A stretch of DNA of 64,000 nucleotides from Octopus sinensis. Lineage: Eukaryota. The first letter of the stretch is position 1. Each line of letters opens with the position of its first letter. Location: assembly GCF_006345805.1 (NCBI RefSeq), contig NC_043004.1:17174001-17238000 (forward strand), in the 5' to 3' direction. The position numbers were made by a program, and so were the translations under genes. A model generated the notes under the pieces. It was not told the DNA's origin. It saw nothing but the letters and a program-made list of their open reading frames with translations, and ran no database searches. Positions 5,921 through 40,860 of the stretch are shown piece by piece.

Positions 5921-6303
5921 AAGTACCTTGCTTACCAACCACATGGTTCCGGGTTCAGTCCCACTGCATAGCACCTTGGGCAAGCGTCTTCTACTATAGC
6001 CTCTGGCCGACCAAAGCCTTGTGAGTGGATTTGGTAGACGGAAACTGAAAGAAGCCCATCGTCTATATGTATATGTATATGTGTGTGTGAGTGTATGTGT
6101 GTGTGTGTGTGTGTGTGTATGTGTCTGTTGTCCCCAACAACATCGCTTGATAACCGATGCTGGTGTGTTTACGTCCCCATAACTTAGCGGTTCGGCAAAA
6201 CAGACCGATAGAATAAGTACTAGGCTTACAAAGTCGATTTACTTGACTGGAGGCGGTGCTCCAGCATGGCCGCAGTCAAATGACTGAAACAAGTAAAAGA
6301 GTA
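5921..6303 (+). mobile_element. SINE-B, lacking the first ~20 nt
   Basis: GCTTACCAACCACATGGTTCCGGGTTCAGTCCCACTGC...GACTGAAACAAGTAAAAGAGTA. Confidence 0.9.
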
Positions 6304-6344
6304 GTGCGTGTGTTTATTCGGCAAAAATATATGAGTGTCCTTGT

Positions 6345-6557
6345 GGTCATGCTGGGGCACCGCCTTTATCCGAGCAAATCGATCCCAGTACTTATTCTTT
6401 GTAAGCCTAGTACTTATTCTATCGGTCTCTTTTGCCGAACAGCTAAGTTACAGAGACGTAAACACACCAGCGTTGGTTGTCAAGCGATGTTGGTAGGACA
6501 AACATAGACACACAAACATATATACACACACATATATATTTATATATATATACATAT

Positions 6558-6613
<56 letters not shown>

Positions 6614-6793
6614 AATATATATATATATTTATATATATATATATATTCATATACGACGGGTTTCTTTCAGTTTCCATCTACTAATACGCTCACAAGGCTT
6701 TGGTCGGCCCGAGGCTATAGTAGAAGACACTTGCCCAAGGTGCCACGCAGTGGGTCTGAACCCGGAATCATGTGGTTGGTAAGCAAGCTACTT
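6345..6793 (-). mobile_element. SINE-B body, head cut at the ORF1-element insertion site
   Basis: Full body on the minus strand, ending at CATGTGGTTGGTAAGCAAGCTACTT where non-SINE sequence begins. Confidence 0.9.
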
Positions 6794-7310
6794 TATTTCA
6801 TACAATTTGCCATAGGAGCATAACGTAGAGTAACTGCGGGCTGGACAATTGCATTAATGGGATGAAATGAATATAGAAATATGAATGAGGGAAACGAACG
6901 GCGCCCGCCGACCGCCGTCTCCCGAAAACAATGTTCTTTTTAGAATAAACAAAATGAGGTTTCAAACTTCTTATCATTTTACAATGACGAGGCTTTCCTA
7001 CCTCTTACCCGTAGTCCTCTTCTTCAACATCTTCAAATTCATTATCACTTCTGACCCCGTACCCCGCCATTTCCCACGCCTCACTCAAGCTCAAAGTGTG
7101 TGCCATACCGGTGACACCTGGCCATAAGTGATACTCCTCTATGAGTCCCTTCAACTTTGTATCACGAGCAACTTTATGAACTCCACAGCTATCTGCGGAG
7201 GCCAATCGGGATCCCGTGTGCAGGCCAGAACTACTCCCTCTTGGTGCTTCTCCACCACCTTCTCCATCTCCACGCCCCTGTAGAAGAATACTAGTAATTC
7301 TTCTTCATTG
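6794..7310 (-). mobile_element. 3' portion of an ORF1-only non-LTR-like element (family member 2)
   Basis: Minus frame reads LLVFFYRGVEMEKVVEKHQEGVVLACTRDPDWPPQIA, homologous to FFYH...FIDRPEWPPQVA at ~39040-39150; shares 3' UTR motifs GCGCCCGCCGACC and AACA.TGTTCTTTTA and terminus CTATGGCAAAT..TGAAATA with 38616-40451. Confidence 0.8.
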
Positions 7311-7313
7311 TTG

Positions 7314-7315
<2 letters not shown>

Positions 7316-7355
<40 letters not shown>

Positions 7356-7510
7356 CAGCGGCAGCGGCGGTTGTGGTGGTGGTGGTAGTAGTAGTAGTAA
7401 TAGCAGCAGCAGCGGTGACGGTAGTAGTAGTAGTAGTAGTAGTAGCGGCGGCGGCGGCGGTTGTGGTGGTGGTGGTAGTAGTAGTAGTAATAGCAGCAGC
7501 AGCGGTGGCG

Positions 7511-7549
<39 letters not shown>

Positions 7550-7690
7550 CAGCAGCAGCAGCGGTGGCGGTGGCGGCGGTAGTAGTAGTAGTAATTGCTG
7601 TTGTTGCTATTGTTTTGGTCCTTGTTTTTGTTGTCCGTGTCGCCTGGGTTGTTGCTGGTTTCTGTTGTTGTGGTTGTCGTAGTTGTTGTT
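7316..7690. repeat. Compound (AGT)n/(GGC)n/(GGT)n/(GTT)n microsatellite with a duplicated higher-order unit
   Basis: Block GCGGCGGTTGTGGTGGTGGTGGTAGTAGTAGTAGTAATAGCAGCAGCAGCGGTG occurs twice. Confidence 0.9.
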
Positions 7691-8107
7691 TGGGGTCAGA
7701 TCAACCTCACTCCGGCAAATCAATGCCTAAAAACCTTCTACTGAAATTTTTGCCCTTTCTTTTTTTCTTTTTTCAATAGAGCTATAAGGTATCTGAACGA
7801 AATTAATCAATGAATCTCCCTTTCATTTAAAACAATAGAGGGTGCTTTGAAAGGCATAGATAAAGACTTTGTTTTCCCCTCACAAGAAGTACAGAATACT
7901 GCTACGATATATATCTCTATTGTACACTGTGCAATCACTCGTGAATCATTAATGGATTATTAGCGCTGAAGTATTAAAGATTTCAGGCATAAAAAAAGAA
8001 GATATCCAAAAGGCCTTCTTTTGAAGATGAATTCATATTTAGCTTGTCCCAAGCGATGAGATAAATGCATAAGCATAGTGTGTGCTCACAAATATACAAT
8101 ATCACAT

Positions 8108-8425
8108 GCGCACATAGCCTAGTCGTTAGAGCAGCGGACTCGCGGTCGAGGGATCGCGGGTTCGAATCTCAGACCGGGCGATGTGTGTGTTTATGAGCGA
8201 AATGTATAAGTCTCAAGTATAAGTTCCACGCGGCTCCGGCAGAAAGTAATGGCGAACTTCTGCTTACTCTTTCGCCACAACTTTCTTTCACTCTTTCCTC
8301 CTGCATCTTGTAGCTCACTTGCGATGTATCGGCGTCCCGTCCAGGTGGGGAATCTATACACCATGGAAACCGGGAAACCGGCCCTTATGAGCCAGGCATG
8401 GCTCAAGAAGGAACAAACAAACAAC
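8108..8425 (+). mobile_element. tRNA-derived SINE of a third family (Meta-domain-like centre)
   Basis: A box TAGCCTAGTCGTTAG, B box GGTTCGAATC; centre GCGATGTATCGGCGTCCCGTCCAGG..GAAACCGGGAAACCGGCCCTTATGAGCC resembles the recalled MetaSINE central domain; (AAAC)n tail. Confidence 0.65.
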
Positions 8426-8964: not shown

Positions 8965-11205
8965 TTGTGCGGAAAGGAGCTACGTACATCGAATTGTCTG
9001 TATCCTGAAGTTTACAAATACTACACCTACAAGGCTGGAAAATTCGAGAGGAAAAAGCAAGGAGAACCTCATCCAACTGAACCTGGAATCAAAATGGGAG
9101 ATGTGCTTGGGAGGGTTTTTACAGTTCATCCAAGAAATCCTGAATGCTTCTTTCTCAAATGGTTGCTTCATCACTTAAGGGATCCAACATCATTTCAAGA
9201 TATGAAAACAATTGATTGAGTTGTCGAAGAGACTTACAGACAAGCATGTATCGAGCTTCGCCTTACAGAAGATGATCATCGTTGGGATAAGACTCTGGAG
9301 GACACAATTGCAACAAATTCTCCAAAACAAGTCGGAGATCTGTTTACAGTAATGATTGTCACTCTCCAACCTAGTTATTCTTCGGGAAAAATATCAGGAG
9401 GCTCTCAGTGAGGATATTTTTCAAATGAGACTTGCTCATCCAGGATTGCAATTGAATACTCAGATTGCAAATTTTGCACTCTGTGAAATTGAAGACAAAG
9501 TGATGAACTTGGCTCAAAGAGATCTCAGCAATTTTTGTCTGTCAAAGCCAAACAGAGAAACTGGACAAATCAACAGAGAAATTTTGAGAGAAACAGGATA
9601 CTATATAGAAGAATTGCGGCAATGTGTTCAAAGCAATGAATCCCTGTTGAACCAAGACCAACAGTAAATGTATCAGAAGGTCCTTGATGATATCAACAGC
9701 AACGATGGAGGGATTGTCTTCTTGGATACACCTGGAGGTACTGGTAAAATTTTTATAGCTAACCTTCTTTTATCTGCAGTGAGTCTCCAAAACAAAGTAG
9801 CTCTGGCAGTAGCAACCTCTGGAATTGCTGCTAACCTCTTGCCTGGAGGACGTACAGTACTCAGCACCTTCAAATTTCCATTGGATTTGAACAATAATGA
9901 AACCGCCATTTGCAATATCAAGAGGGAAACCAACTTGGCTAAGCTGCTGGTGGAGATGGCACACAAGCGAACATTTGACAAAACACTCCAAGACGTTAGA
10001 CAGAATTCACAAATCATGGGAGCTATCACTGTGCTACTCCCTGGTGATTTTAGACAAACATTACCAGTCATTACAAGAGAAATTCCAGCTGATGAAATCA
10101 ATGATTGCCTGAAAATGTTTTACATCTGGAGCCATGTTCAAAAACTCAGCCTGAAAACAAACATGAGAGTTGGAATCACAGATGACCTTGAAGCAGGAAG
10201 ATTTGCTGCTTTGTTGTTGCAGCTTGGCAATGGAACCATCAAAATGAACTAAAACGGAGATATTTCACTCCCAAATGGTTCTGGAGTTTCAGTCTCAAGT
10301 ATCCAAGAATTGATTAACCATGTTTATCCAAACATTAAACACCATTTCATGGATTCAAACTGGCTTTGTGAGAGGGCCATAGAGGATCGACTTCAAGGGT
10401 TGTCAGAAGAATTGAGGAAACATACATTATGCTAGGGATCAAAAAAGGCGGCGAGCTGGCAGAAACGTTAGCACACAGGGCGAAATGCTTAACGGTATTG
10501 CGTCTGTCGTTGCGTTCTGAGTTCGACTTTGCCTTTCATCCTTTCGGGGTCGATAAATTAAGTACCAGTTACGCACTGGGGTCGATGTAATCGACTTAAT
10601 CCGTTTGTCTGTCCTTGTTTGTCCCCTCTATGTTTAGCTCCTTGTGGGCAATAAAGAAACACATATTAGCTCCCAAAAATCAAACTGTGGATAGCATCAA
10701 CTGGAAACTTCTCCAAGAAATTCCAAAAGAAACCATGAAGTACCTTTCAACTGAGACTGTGGTTGAACTCATTGAATCCTCCTGGAATGCCATCACACGA
10801 GCTGAAACTAAAAGAAAATGTGCCAATTATGCTATTGATAAATTTGGATCCTCCAAAGCTTTGTAATGGAACAAGGCTAATTGTCAAGAAGATGCTTTCT
10901 AATCTCTTGGAAGCAGAGAACCTTTCTTGTCCAGGAAAGGAGGAAAGAGTTTTAACTCCAAGAATCCCCTTAATGCCTTCAGATTTTCCTTTTGATTTCA
11001 AAACACTTCAGTTTCAAGTGCGAGTGGGCTATGCAATGCCAATCAATAAGTCCCAATGACATTCATTGAAAGTAACTGGGATTCATCTTATGGAACCCTG
11101 CTTTTCTCACGGCCAGCTCTATGCTGGTTTTCAAGGGTTGGAAATGGAAACAAGCTATTTGTACTGACCTCGAATGGGAAGGCCAAAAATGTTGTTTGTC
11201 ATGCA
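8965..11205 (+). pseudogene. Helitron RepHel helicase region (PIF1-like SF1B), frameshifted and stop-interrupted
   Basis: LGRVFTVHPRNPECFFL, PTSFQDMKT, Walker [83 protein letters not shown]; no HUH Rep motifs seen. Confidence 0.92.
10447..10659 (+). mobile_element. Young SINE-A inserted in the Helitron
   Basis: GGCGGCGAGCTGGCAGAAACGTTAGC ... CTTGTGGGCAATAAAGAAA; removing 10382-10665 restores the helicase frame ERA-ILAPKN. Confidence 0.9.
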
Positions 11206-14770: not shown

Positions 14771-15950
14771 CACCGGTTAACAAAGAATTCACCCCAAGAA
14801 AAAATATCTGTATCTTACACGTTTTAGTATGCAGAATTCAAAAGTAACGTTAAATTATCCGTATCACCCACAGTTTCTCTGTTCCACGACATCCCTCTCA
14901 GTTACTGTTACGTGGGCTAAATTTCAGTTAAGCTGTTGAAATGTGAAGCTAACGGTTTAAGAAATACTGCTAATTTAAATGTTTATGAATAGAAGTAGGC
15001 TAATGAAATCATAAATCTAGTTATATGAGTCAATTAGTCACCGAAGCTTGGCAAAATTGAGTCGATAAGTCACCGATGCTTTGTCAGTACTGTGCTTGAG
15101 GTGTAGACTCACGGTTGTGTACTAAGTTTACATATTCCATTCACCTTCATAACGCCAAGAAACTGTATAAACATCACAAAAAACGTTTGCTATATTTGCG
15201 GTGATGACTTAATATTAAAGTCACAAAGATGGCGTTTCACGCCATTGATTAAAAAGTGCTATGAACATAACTGCAAAGTGGGTGATCAGGATAAAAGCTG
15301 GGCTCTTCATGTGTGTTGCGTAACCTGTGTCAGGCTTCTCACTGCATGAACCAAAAGTCCACGCCATATGCCTTTTGCCTTCCTTATTATTTAGAGAGAG
15401 TCCAACGATCACACTTCAAATTACTAATTCTGCACGACGAATATACAAAGTATAACGTCAAAATCCAAGCATACTGTAAAATATTCTTATATACAATCTA
15501 CTGTGAGGCCAGTACTTCACAGTCAAAACTTACCTGTACCTGACCCTCAAAACAAATGACACTTAGTGACGACGAGTCAAGTGATGGAGATATGAAGAAA
15601 GAAAAAGAAGACACGGACTTTGAACCTAACTGTTCTTCATGTGAACCACATATGTTGAGTCAGGGAGATCTGAATGATCTTGTGCGGGATTTAAACTTGT
15701 TGAAAAAGCAAGTTGAACTTCTTGGTTCCAGGTTAAAGGGTTGGAACCTTCTCCGGAAAGAGACTAAAGTTATTTTTTATCGTGCTTGGCACTGTGATTT
15801 TACAATTTTTTCTCACTTGAGGATGGTATGGTGTTTTGTAATGATGTATATTCTGTTATGGAGGAACTTAACCACAAATATAGCACGAATGAGTGACGTT
15901 TCTTTATTGACTCCTCAAAAGTAAGCTTGAAATCAGTTTTACTCCCCAAT
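14771..15950 (+). mobile_element. Chapaev3-like (CMC superfamily) DNA transposon, 5' end and N-terminal transposase part
   Basis: TTA|CACCGGTTAACAAA terminus; decayed CYICG..KVGDQDKSWALHVCCVTCVRLL..MPFA..LNDLVRDLNL..ELLGSRLKGWNLL..FIDSSKVSLKSVLL; superfamily label from recalled motifs. Confidence 0.7.
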
Positions 15951-17970: not shown

Positions 17971-18441
<471 letters not shown>

Positions 18442-18456
18442 ATAATACATATTGAT

Positions 18457-18895
18457 TTCAAATTTTGGCACAGACCAGCAATTTCGGAGGAGATGATACG
18501 TCAATTTCATCGGCCACAATGCTCAACTGGTACTTATTTTTACCAACCCAACAAGGATGAAGGGTCGAGTTGTTATCGGAGGAACTTGAACTCAGAACGT
18601 AAAGTTGAATGAAATGCCACTAAGCATTCTTCCCGGCCAACGATTCTGCCAACCGGCAATCTAATTTATATACAGTATATATTGAATTCAAATTTTGGCA
18701 CAAAGCCAGTAACTTCGAGGTGGAGAGTATGTCGATTACATTGAACCCAGCTCCCAACTGGTAATTATTTTATTAATCTCAAAAGTATAAAAGCAAAGTT
18801 GACGTCGGCGGAATTTGAACTCAGAATGCAAAGACGGATAAAATGCTGCTAAGCATTTTTCCTGGCGTGGTAACAATTCTGCCAGCTCACCGCCT
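18457..18895 (-). mobile_element. Two adjacent SINE-A copies (18457-18657, 18685-18895)
   Basis: TTCAAATTTTGGCACA 3' ends, GGCGGAATTTGAACTCAGAA, CTGCCAGCTCACCGCC head. Confidence 0.8.
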
Positions 18896-38231: not shown

Positions 38232-38615
38232 TACTCTTTTACTCTTTTACTTGTTTCAGTCATTTGACTGTGGCCATGCTGGAGCACCGCCTTTAGTCGA
38301 ACAAATCGACCCCAGAGCTTATTCTTAGTAAGCCTAGTACTTATTCTATCGGTCTCTTTTGCCGAACCGCTAAGTTACGGGGATGTAAACACACCAGCAT
38401 CGGTTGTCAAATGATGTTGGGGAGGACAAACACAGGCACACAAACATATACACACATACTTACATATAAATACACGACTGGCTTCTTTCAGTTTCCGTCT
38501 ACCAAATCCACTCACAAGGCTTTGGTCGGCCCGAGGCTATAGTAGAAGACACTTGCCCAAGGTGCCATGGAGTAGGACTGAATCCAGAACCATGTGGTTG
38601 GTAAGCAAGCTACTT
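38232..38615 (-). mobile_element. SINE-B body; its first 19 nt lie at 40452-40470
   Basis: Ends CATGTGGTTGGTAAGCAAGCTACTT; the missing head CACAGCCACTCCTACGCCT is found beyond the 1.8-kb insert. Confidence 0.93.
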
Positions 38616-40451
38616 TATTTCATTTCATTTGCCATAGAGGCAGTACAAAGATGGGTAGCTTTGCGAGGTGGACAAGACATTGAAGAGGCCAATGATAATA
38701 ATACAAGATGATAAGGATGGGAGAAGACAGAAAGCGCCCGCCGACCCACTGCTTCTCTATAACATTGTTCTTTTAAAAAGACACACCTTGAGGTAATAAC
38801 CCTCTTACAATTTACAATATTTTACAATTGTTGGGACTAAGAAGTCCATTACAATTTAAAACATAATAAAACACATATTGAGGCGATGAACCTCTTACCT
38901 CAAGTTCCCGATTAATTCTCTTGCGACCTGCAGACACCCCTGTATCCGCAAGTCGAGGTACCAATAAAGTAATCTATAATCCTCCCTTGGGAAGGAGCCT
39001 GATGTATGAAATAACTCATTCTTTTCTAGTAACAGAGCAGCCACCTGCGGAGGCCACTCTGGTCTGTCAATAAATGTCGGTTCCATTAGTTCCCGACTCT
39101 GAAGGACATTTTCCACATAATTATCAATGGCTCCTCCACTGTGATAGAAGAACTCATATCTTTCCACACTTACATCGGGAGGGGTCTCCACTCCCTCGCT
39201 TGGTGGCACACATCGTACCGGCGAGGTTTCCATCTTCTCTCCCTCCGGTGGCAATCCCACCAAAGGGGTTTCGGGGCATGCCGCCGCCGGCGATGCCCCG
39301 TTTTTCTTTTTTTCTTCTTTTTTCCCTTTTTCACAGCAGGGGGGGTGAGGTTCCTCCGGCATGTCCGTAGACCTCTTCTTCTCTCCCGCCGCCTCGAGAT
39401 CCATCGGTGGGCAACCATTGTTGCCCACCTTCTTTCTTTTTGTTCCATTTTTCGAGGGGCTTACCTCCCCTCAACTTTCTCCCTCTCTCCCTCCAATGAA
39501 GGAGCAGGGTGCTCCGTTGGGGGAACAGGGAGTTCTTCATCGTTTAACTGTTCCAGGACCGTTGCCTGGTCCCGGCGACAGGGGCCTTATGTGGCCCGAT
39601 TCCAGGCACAGGTGACACTTGAGGGGGCGTCCCTCAACCATCACCGAGTACCTGGAACCGGCCATTGTTAAAAAATCTGGTAAAACCAGATCTTCAGCCG
39701 ATTGGGCCCATAGGGTCAAAATTGCTTTTGACCCGACCCAATCGACCGCAGGCATTACTTTTACGTTTAAGAGCCTGGCAGGGCCCCGACGGATAGTGTC
39801 TTCTGTCCATTTGGCCTCTATACCGGGTGGCAGCCCACACACCTAAGCTCTTGTCAACCCTCTACCGCCATAAGTAGAGAGAAACAAGATTTTCCCCCCC
39901 TCCAAAGGCGTGGTTGCAAAATCACGAGCTTCCGCAGGGGTGTTAAAAAGTACGCACACAGTTCGGTACTTCGCACCCCTGCGGATAAACTTAACAGTTG
40001 GCAGATAGTCTGCCAACTCCTCCTCAATTTCTTCCTCAGAGAAGACCTTGATGGTGTCAAGGACCTTGGAATAGGTCCTTAACACCACCGTCTCTCCGTG
40101 TAATTTTTTAACCATTCTTTGCCACTCCAAAGCGGGTTTCATAGTTGCCATGTTGATAGCCAAAACAAAATAATAATTCACAAACAAAAGTCCAAATGTC
40201 CAAATGAAAGTCTATAAAAAAACTCAAAACAGATCAGAAAGACAGACAAGAGAAGAAAGAGCGAAGGAAGATAGTCCAAAATGGCAACACAACACAATTC
40301 TGCTACTAGTAATCCAAACTGGTAATCCACAAATGGTATTAATACTTGCTGTCTTCGTACTCCTTGCCTGTGGTAAATCCAAGGAACTTCCAGGGCACTT
40401 TCACAAACAAATTTTTGCGGAGGTGCTACGCCTCCTCAAAAACACAATTCT
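38616..40451 (-). mobile_element. Full-length ORF1-only non-LTR-like element (family member 1, 1836 bp) inserted in the SINE-B A box
   Basis: Bounded by the two SINE-B halves; ~300-nt leader, one ORF, ~280-nt 3' UTR, tail ATGAAATGAAATA; no TSD, ~4 nt (TGGT) of target missing. Confidence 0.9.
38895..40151 (-). pseudogene. Gag-like ORF1 (~420 aa reconstructed) with CCHC knuckle
   Basis: Track ORFs 39843-40187, 39537-39842 and 38895-39428 share one frame; one premature TAG at 39843-39845; a -2 deletion in the knuckle and a -1 deletion ~120 nt later restore RPLKCHLCLESGHIRxxCRRDQATVLEQLNDEELP. Confidence 0.82.
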
Positions 40452-40470
40452 CACAGCCACTCCTACGCCT
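40452..40470 (-). mobile_element. Displaced 5' end of the SINE-B at 38232-38615
   Basis: Reverse complement AGGCGTAGGAGTGGCTGTG equals the SINE-B start seen in intact copies. Confidence 0.9.
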
Positions 40471-40484
40471 ATAGGATAAGATGA

Positions 40485-40860
40485 CAATAACCTCGGCAGA
40501 ATTTCAACTCAGAATATGAAGACAAATAAAATGCCGCTAAGCGTTTTTGTCCGACTTGTTAACGATTCTACCAGCTTACCATTTTAACCAACAACAATAA
40601 AGGTTTACCAAGATGGTTACAGTTTGGATAAGGTTTTACACAACAGAATCTTCTTCAGTCAACGTCTGATACTGATTTTATGGAACTTCTGCAAAAAGGA
40701 TGTTTTTAAAATTATCTTTAAATTATTTTGTGTGAGGTGACAAAGGTAGTTACATTAGACTATAGTAGAATAGACTTGCCCATGGTAGGTATGCAGCTGG
40801 ATTGAACCCGAAATCACGTAACTGCAAAGTGAGTTTCTTAACCACCAGCCATGCCTGCGC
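40485..40860 (-). mobile_element. SINE-A fragment (40485-40585) and SINE-B head fragment (40755-40860)
   Basis: CCTCGGCAGAATTTCAACTCAGAA; GACTATAGTAGAATAGACTTGCCC..CTTAACCACCAGCC. Confidence 0.65.

Follow-up and report, generated by a model that had tools for sequence, protein, structure and literature searches.

Within a 64,000-nucleotide (nt) window of Octopus sinensis DNA (contig NC_043004.1 of assembly GCF_006345805.1, positions 17,174,001 to 17,238,000, forward strand), a minus-strand copy of a short interspersed nuclear element (SINE), here termed SINE-B, was identified at positions 38232-40470 from the sequence reading, interrupted by a co-oriented insert of 1836 bp. The division of this SINE into a 19-nt head and a body, claimed in an earlier sequence-only reading of the window, was found to be as described. 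The insert carries one open reading frame (ORF), of the type (ORF1) that comes first in LINEs (long interspersed nuclear elements); it is probably a member of a non-autonomous, ORF1-only lineage that is copied into one exact nucleotide position of SINE-B. The features of the split copy, in window coordinates, are as follows.

40452..40470, minus strand: SINE-B head, nt 1-19, AGGCGTAGGAGTGGCTGTG, matching the heads of intact copies and preceded by cctat; it stops within the A-box-like motif TGGCTGTG(TGG).
38616..40451, minus strand: ORF1-only retroelement, copy 1, 1836 bp, agaattgtgtttttgagg...ctctatggcaaatgaaatgaaata.
40152..40451, minus strand: 5' leader of copy 1, 300 nt, beginning AGAATTGTGTTTTTGAGG and containing a T5 run.
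38895..40151, minus strand: decayed ORF1 of copy 1, ~419 codons, with its ATG at 40151 and its stop at 38897-38895.
38616..38894, minus strand: 3' untranslated region (UTR) and fixed tail of copy 1, 279 nt, with conserved block GGTCGGCGGGCGC and terminus AAATGAAATGAAATA.
38232..38615, minus strand: SINE-B body from nt 24, AAGTAGCTTGCTTACCAACCACATGG... / AAGTAGCTTGCTTACC... / AAGTAGCTTGCTTACCAACC...

Copy 1 (~1.84 kb) is probably full length, because its 5' end coincides with that of a 70%-identical copy at a second O. sinensis locus (L001, CM016886); both start at the same nucleotide, (TGTG)AGAATT, with the L001 start reading TGTGAGAATT. Comparison with the intact copy GGCGGCTGTG TGGT AAGTAGC showed TGGT to be absent from the split copy, and target loss was placed at 4 to 8 nt, since the TGTG of the 5' junction could be the element's own (the L001 copy starts alike). 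The single CCHC-bearing ORF of ~420 amino acids with frameshifts that had been proposed for the insert was confirmed, and an in-frame TAG at 39845-39843, which had gone unmentioned, was added to its interruptions; the frameshifts lie at 39581/39580, within the CCHC knuckle, and at ~39470-39464. The absence of an endonuclease or reverse transcriptase (RT) was likewise upheld, with tblastn using an intact octopus ORF2 as query finding no apurinic/apyrimidinic endonuclease-like (APE) or RT coding sequence within the window. No long terminal repeat (LTR)-like terminal repeats were found for the insert.

The insert terminates ...CTATGGCAAATGAAATGAAATA, and a mini-hairpin, TGCC-TCTAT-GGCA, is located in its 3' UTR at 38642-38630. 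Its tail, previously taken for a short TGAAA repeat, proved instead to be a fixed sequence, GGCAAAT-NNNN-ATGAAATA, in 3/3 copies, with no variable TGAAA microsatellite. The 3' UTR of copy 1 was also observed to contain a direct repeat of two 34-nt copies (38794-38827 and 38838-38871, 71% identical, 44 nt apart) reading GTAAGAGG..CCTCAA..GTGTG, which is missing from copy 2 (described below) and explains most of the difference in UTR length. A division of the leader into tandem monomers, with 236 nt at the L001 locus as additional monomers, was rejected, the alignments scoring no higher than shuffled sequence.

Numbering of SINE-B starts at AGGC, with the conserved 3' junction of the inserts falling between T23 and A24 (T23/A24). 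At motif level only, the A-box-like TGGCTGTGTGG at nt 12-22 matches 10/11 positions of TRGCNNAGTGG and the B-box-like GGTTCAGTCCC at nt 55-65 matches 9/11 positions of GGTTCGANNCC, the two showing tRNA-like spacing; in the body at 38232-38615 a B-box-like GGTTCAGTCC is accompanied by an internal TG/TA microsatellite and a (GTAAAAGA)n-like tail. The tRNA derivation assumed for this SINE is putative: SINE-B has these motifs but returned no ARAGORN gene and no Rfam covariance-model match to tRNA even at E <= 10. The cut site is the 3' edge of the A-box-like motif, the last 3 nt of which are lost in copy 1 alone, so that the earlier placing of the break within the A box is correct for the head of copy 1 and not for the conserved junction. 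Four occurrences of the 18-nt head pattern were counted in the window, where 0.08 would be expected, and every one of them marks a SINE-B 5' end. A derivation of the SINE-B 3' tail from the LINE group discussed below was considered and rejected, as the similarity was not significant.

A scan of 191 kb of Octopus DNA by relaxed BLASTN identified four copies of the ORF1-only family. All three that possess a 3' end were found to be joined to SINE-B at T23/A24 and to be co-oriented with it, which is what the sequence-only reading had predicted for the flanks of other copies; random integration predicts ~3.7e-5 per copy (14 such sites in 191 kb). Target specificity was taken, following the criterion of Kojima, as >20% of copies at the same target, position and orientation, and the share observed in this small sample was 3/3. 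The further features of the window that bear on this are given here.

6794..7315, minus strand: copy 2, of a diverged subfamily and without the 5' part, comprising the ORF1 C-terminal domain (stop at 7007-7005), a 211-nt 3' UTR and the same tail.
6340..6793, minus strand: SINE-B body hosting copy 2, with an expanded internal (TA)n.
17972..18440, minus strand: intact SINE-B of the T4 variant (..GGCTGTGTGGT/AAGTAGC..), an unoccupied target.
5921..6303, plus strand: headless SINE-B body starting at the insertion nucleotide (AAGTACC...), with no recognisable insert upstream.

Copy 2 was found to be joined to SINE-B at exactly the nucleotide used by copy 1, with no SINE head seen upstream. The two copies are 47% identical in their C-terminal coding sequence and 61% identical in their 3' UTRs, against 88-91% for the SINE bodies that host them. 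As the inserts are far more diverged than the SINE bodies, this junction was made twice and not inherited. A third copy was identified on O. bimaculoides CM046628 (L074), a locus that had been retrieved for an unrelated reason, where a minus-strand, 5'-truncated copy of 138 bp (75% identical to copy 1) lies between the SINE-B head AGGCGCAGGAGTGGCTGTGTGGTAAG and the rest of the SINE, AAGTAGCTTGCTTATC... Its 3' junction is the same, while the 5' junction, with an AAG microhomology, and the point of truncation are different. Whereas the loss of ~4 nt without a target-site duplication, noted earlier, is valid for copy 1 (4 to 8 nt), the L074 copy represents a precise insertion or a 3-nt duplication, its head comprising nt 1-23/26. 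Mutual identity among the three inserts is 47-75%, while the identity of their SINE bodies is 88-91% among themselves and 94-98% to the consensus. Insertion at this site, in one orientation, took place independently three times.

The three copies combine a fixed 3' end with different lengths (1836, at least 522 and 138 bp) and with microhomologies at their 5' junctions (TGTG and AAG). This pairing of a constant 3' junction with variable 5' junctions indicates target-primed reverse transcription from one specific nick. Seven copies of SINE-B with the T4 sequence (AAGTAGC) were sampled, three of which were occupied, three empty and one headless, while 0/7 A4 copies were occupied; intact T4 copies with heads were found in the window at 18418 and at L073 6270.

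In both copies that span the region (copies 1 and 2), the ORF1 stop codon is followed by a short UTR and the tail, with no ORF2, and the context of the stop codon (G*EV) is homologous between them. This layout evidence rests on copies 1 and 2, the L001 copy having lost its 3' part. Since the layout is common to two diverged subfamilies, with 3' UTRs 61% identical, the ORF1-only state is a trait of the lineage and not the outcome of a single deletion. The element was found to have no ORF2 (APE and RT) of its own and is thus non-autonomous. The ORF1-only type proposed in the sequence-only reading was accordingly retained, and the simple deletion derivative that it would have accepted had most copies carried an ORF2 was not what these two copies showed.

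The ORF1 protein was searched against 1.84 billion representative proteins using phmmer, resulting in 20 matches. The 19 that could be traced were from Octopus sinensis, O. vulgaris, O. bimaculoides and Argonauta hians, or from contigs (unattributed sequencing runs and one metagenome), and every match for which a source organism was named or a genome record linked was octopod. The top match, with 61% identity, was XP_029652367 of O. sinensis; the ORF of the L001 copy bears the gene annotation LOC115225585 (XP_029652367-9), this gene probably being the remnant of a transposon. In the ORF1 of copy 1, tandem RRM-like domains are accompanied by a CCHC knuckle, a low-complexity linker and a C-terminal domain. 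Common to the family are a motif of the RGxxYGTVxVxF type, a second domain, the VEGRxPxCxxCGxxGHxxxxC motif and a low-complexity linker, to which the long members add a C-terminal domain containing FPxDVG. An AlphaFold model of XP_029652367 (pLDDT 79) displayed two RRM-like domains, and its best Foldseek matches were tandem-RRM proteins such as SFPQ/NONO and hnRNP A1 UP1. An RRM combined with a CCHC knuckle characterises this type of LINE ORF1 protein (ORF1p). Comparison of copy 1 with the L001 copy gave a dN/dS of 0.23 over 186 codons, indicating that ORF1 was under purifying selection while the lineages diverged.

Other searches gave no matches of this kind. Nothing above threshold was found with Pfam for pieces of the ORF, and Transposase_22 was not among the weak matches. 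A word-indexed protein search with the conceptual ORF found no match, probably due to its low-complexity linker swamping the candidates. In the same type of search P0001 matched only itself, and a peptide translated across the 3' junction found no candidate, which implies that ORFs of octopus repeats are not in that protein collection. A metagenome scan for the tail pattern yielded 60 chance matches, none of them cephalopod. Logan contigs of six runs (L066-L071, SRR11869384-94) were observed to contain the same ~1.7-kb contig, with an ORF1 homologue of 294 residues followed by ~560 nt without the start of an ORF2; it could stem from transcription of a further ORF1-only element or of a domesticated gene.

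Homologous ORF1s were also found to precede ORF2s of autonomous type. On an ENA contig, MALLKVGSINVRGL..., a sequence of the sort with which APE domains typically begin, comes 35 nt after a homologous ORF1. In O. sinensis (L002, CM016872), ORF1 is followed by a decayed ORF2 in which Pfam identified Exo_endo_phos and zf-RVT, and in O. vulgaris (L064, OX597840) an intact ORF2 of 1132 residues was found to possess Exo_endo_phos, RVT_1 and zf-RVT, its top match among solved structures being human L1 ORF2p (E = 2e-71). Judged by the homology of its ORF1 to those preceding APE/RT/zf-RVT ORF2s, the ORF1-only element is derived from an L1/Tx1-type non-LTR lineage. Copies 1 and 2 and three full-length LINEs have a motif in common at their 3' ends, ..TTTGT..GCCYYTRTGGCNAAT..AAA, which includes a hairpin of 4 bp that is 95% paired, with two pairs compensated; at n=5 sequences, this is suggestive of homology between the 3' end of the insert and those of autonomous LINEs.

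The way in which these related LINEs behave may point to targeted insertion. That of L002 is bounded on both sides by (ATT)n (9700-9790 and 15340-15380), suggesting a microsatellite-specific family, while the full-length LINEs of L064 (2400-17026) and L075 (O. sinensis CM016867) form head-to-tail tandem arrays with a period of ~5.28 kb, and a LINE of Argonauta carries a 16-nt target-site duplication. The ORF1 protein in the L064 and L075 arrays goes under the name 'EPM2A-interacting 1-like', seemingly an annotation error. Among the recently active families in a repeat census of O. vulgaris, 13 are L1-Tx1 and none is plain L1; targeting is not mentioned there (PMC13282606).

Taken together, we consider it probable that the insert belongs to a non-autonomous ORF1-only lineage that arose from octopod L1/Tx1-type LINEs and is copied into T23/A24 of SINE-B by target-primed reverse transcription. 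The element RNA would carry a single ORF, encoding an ORF1p that combines two RRM-like domains with a CCHC knuckle, together with a LINE-type 3' end, and the ORF2 protein (APE and RT) of a related LINE would act on it in trans. The bottom strand of SINE-B would be nicked at the complement of ..GTGTGGT/AAGTAGC.., one nucleotide beyond the A-box-like motif. Reverse transcription beginning at this nick would render the 3' junction invariant, and joining of the 5' end by microhomology would leave the copy's length and its 5' junction free to vary, as may be seen in copy 1 (1836 bp, 4 nt of target lost) and the O. bimaculoides copy (138 bp, no target loss). Such an insertion would separate the A- and B-box-like motifs by 0.1-1.8 kb of DNA that starts with a T5 run, and the SINE copy should be silenced, with the T5 run of the leader predicted to terminate RNA polymerase III arriving from the SINE head. 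We infer the mobilisation in trans, the placing of specificity in the endonuclease of the partner and the loss of SINE transcription, and the use of SINE heads as safe havens, proposed in the sequence-only reading, is likewise conjectural.

An identical junction could also be inherited, were one ancestral insertion to have been followed by amplification of the composite of insert and SINE body through the 3' tail of the SINE. The SINE bodies next to inserts and the headless body at 5921 are indeed mutually 91-94% identical, closer than to most intact copies, and copy 2 has no SINE head upstream; however, the divergence of the inserts (coding 47%, 3' UTR 61%) exceeds that of the bodies (88-91%), intact T4 copies with heads exist (window 18418, L073 6270), and a 5'-truncated composite could not have the SINE-B head that lies immediately upstream of the 138-bp L074 copy. 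Alternatively, an RT copying SINE-B RNA from its 3' end may stall at nt 24, where a tRNA-like modification or structure could for instance halt it, and then switch to the RNA of the ORF1 element at its 3' end, in the manner of U6/L1 chimeras. Template switching of this kind would yield a constant junction and would account for the headless body at 5921, but the heads of copy 1 (nt 1-19) and L074 (nt 1-23/26) stand directly upstream of their inserts, at normal SINE 5' ends, so that the RT would have to return to that same RNA by another, precise switch, and the process is thus contradicted for two of the three copies. Because the head is directly upstream in L074, both explanations are ruled out for the family as sampled, and we regard either as very improbable.

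Nesting by chance of an internally deleted, one-off fragment of a non-specific LINE in a very abundant SINE would be unsurprising in itself, given that SINEs make up ~11.6% of the O. vulgaris genome (PMC13282606) and nesting is common, but it would have had to hit a single nucleotide, in a single orientation, with 3/3 junctions, at ~3.7e-5 each, and would not provide two subfamilies with a common ORF1-only layout; its likelihood is close to negligible. The target might, on the other hand, be found by RNA in place of a sequence-specific endonuclease, with read-through transcripts that end in SINE-B annealing to SINE-B DNA where a non-specific L1-type enzyme has nicked it and directing integration through homology. 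Each copy sits upstream of a SINE body, so that read-through RNA would contain the target sequence, R1/R2-type elements are known to be targeted more sharply when target sequence is co-transcribed (discussed in PMC4494074), and the context of the nick, CTT/A, is similar to a degenerate L1 site. The intact tail of equal length in all copies and the nucleotide-exact junction nonetheless fit a fixed nick better than annealing along 380 nt, and guidance by RNA is considered unlikely.

Several points weigh against the targeted, ORF1-only lineage favoured here. It is based on n=3 junctions only, one of which is the case that first drew attention, and both ORF copies in the window are dead, with stops and frameshifts. 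The L001 copy is without a clean SINE-B head at its 5' end: at L001 9450-9726, a SINE-B head with 18 nt of body, in the same orientation as that copy, is followed by 236 unmatched nt and then by the 5' end of the copy. All occupied targets are T4, with a preference for this variant and a younger age of T4 being inseparable at these numbers. The assignment to Tx1 as opposed to L1 proper is based on domain content and the O. vulgaris census (PMC13282606) and not on an RT phylogeny. Finally, no ORF2-bearing element with the 3' end or the target of the insert was found among the octopus DNA examined, leaving the partner hypothetical.

Targeting of other repeats is well described among LINEs of the Tx1 clade, which insert into DNA transposons, LTR elements, microsatellites and small-RNA genes (Kojima 2015, PMC4494074), with Tx1L found in Tx1D, Tx1-Mar and SINEU in Mariner-N4_AMi, Keno in U2 and Kibi/Koshi in microsatellites (PMC4494074). 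The non-autonomous SINEU elements use the targets of their Tx1 partners (PMC4494074). The octopus element resembles these LINEs and their riders in belonging to an APE-type group, in occupying one position and orientation within another repeat, in being a non-autonomous element with a common target and in its small target duplications or truncations, and its octopus relatives are flanked by (ATT)n or lie in tandem arrays. It differs in that the target is a SINE, beside an A-box-like promoter motif, and in that the rider codes for protein; no report of a SINE as the specific target of such LINEs was found in the literature searched.

In its layout the element is closest to HAL1 ('half-L1') of mammals, derived from L1, non-autonomous and coding for ORF1p alone (PMC5753468, with reference to Smit 1999 and Bao & Jurka 2010). 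Both have a leader, ORF1, a short 3' UTR and a LINE-type 3' end with no ORF2, and in both the layout persists as a lineage, with two subfamilies here and several independent origins in mammals. In contrast to HAL1, which is not site-specific, the octopus element has an ORF1p of tandem RRM and CCHC without Transposase_22 and an invertebrate host; it works like HAL1 but is not a HAL1 member. With R1/R2-type LINEs of ribosomal DNA it shares a nucleotide-precise 3' junction, a variable 5' junction, 5' truncation and a multicopy 'safe' target that is inactivated, while these differ from it in clade and endonuclease (restriction-like in R2), in their host-gene target and in being autonomous. The octopus element joins two known habits, Tx1-type targeting and the HAL1-like ORF1-only layout, with a different type of ORF1p and a SINE target; a description of this targeting and layout combined, in an invertebrate and with a SINE as target, was not found in the literature searched.

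Octopus genomes consist of ~12% SINE and 13% LINE (PMC13282606), and the element offers a natural example of parasitism between transposable elements and a candidate brake on SINE activity. It also points to an APE-type endonuclease with a defined recognition site of 15-20 nt, of relevance to targeted integration, and carries the HAL1 idea, of an ORF1-only derivative that persists as a lineage, over to invertebrates and to an ORF1p of another type. Should selection maintain ORF1 in elements without ORF2, this would bear on how far ORF1p acts in cis. A wider proposal is more doubtful, though conceivable: the lineage may have split into at least three subfamilies with a nucleotide-exact SINE site and may act as a hyperparasite that curbs SINE expansion, with a sizeable share of young T4 copies knocked out (3/7 sampled), dependent either on an undescribed SINE-targeting LINE or on targeting by its own ORF1p or read-through RNA.

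Some minor observations were made on sequences adjoining these elements. A compound minisatellite at 7316-7700, with (ACT)n, (GCC)n and (GCT)n blocks and a unit of ~60-90 nt, abuts the 5' end of copy 2; it is located where copy 1 has its low-complexity linker and may be an expansion of that linker. The headless body at 5921-6303 is 94% identical to the body hosting copy 1. Upstream of it lies another repeat, also present at L002 15684-15768, and a G-to-A-edited head in this position was a weak match overlapping another repeat. This body may have been left behind by an abortive event at the nick used by the inserts, or its start may be coincidental.

Another tRNA-like SINE (GGTAAGCTGG..TTCTGAGTTCAAATTC..) was found directly upstream of a co-oriented SINE-B twice in the window, on the minus strand at 40476-40600 and 18445-18600. 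It is broken at differing points in the two cases, and the arrangement is probably ordinary nesting. At 8120-8190 on the plus strand, a strongly tRNA-like segment (..GGGTTCGAATCTCAGACCGGGCG) that received no ARAGORN call is presumably the head of a third SINE family.

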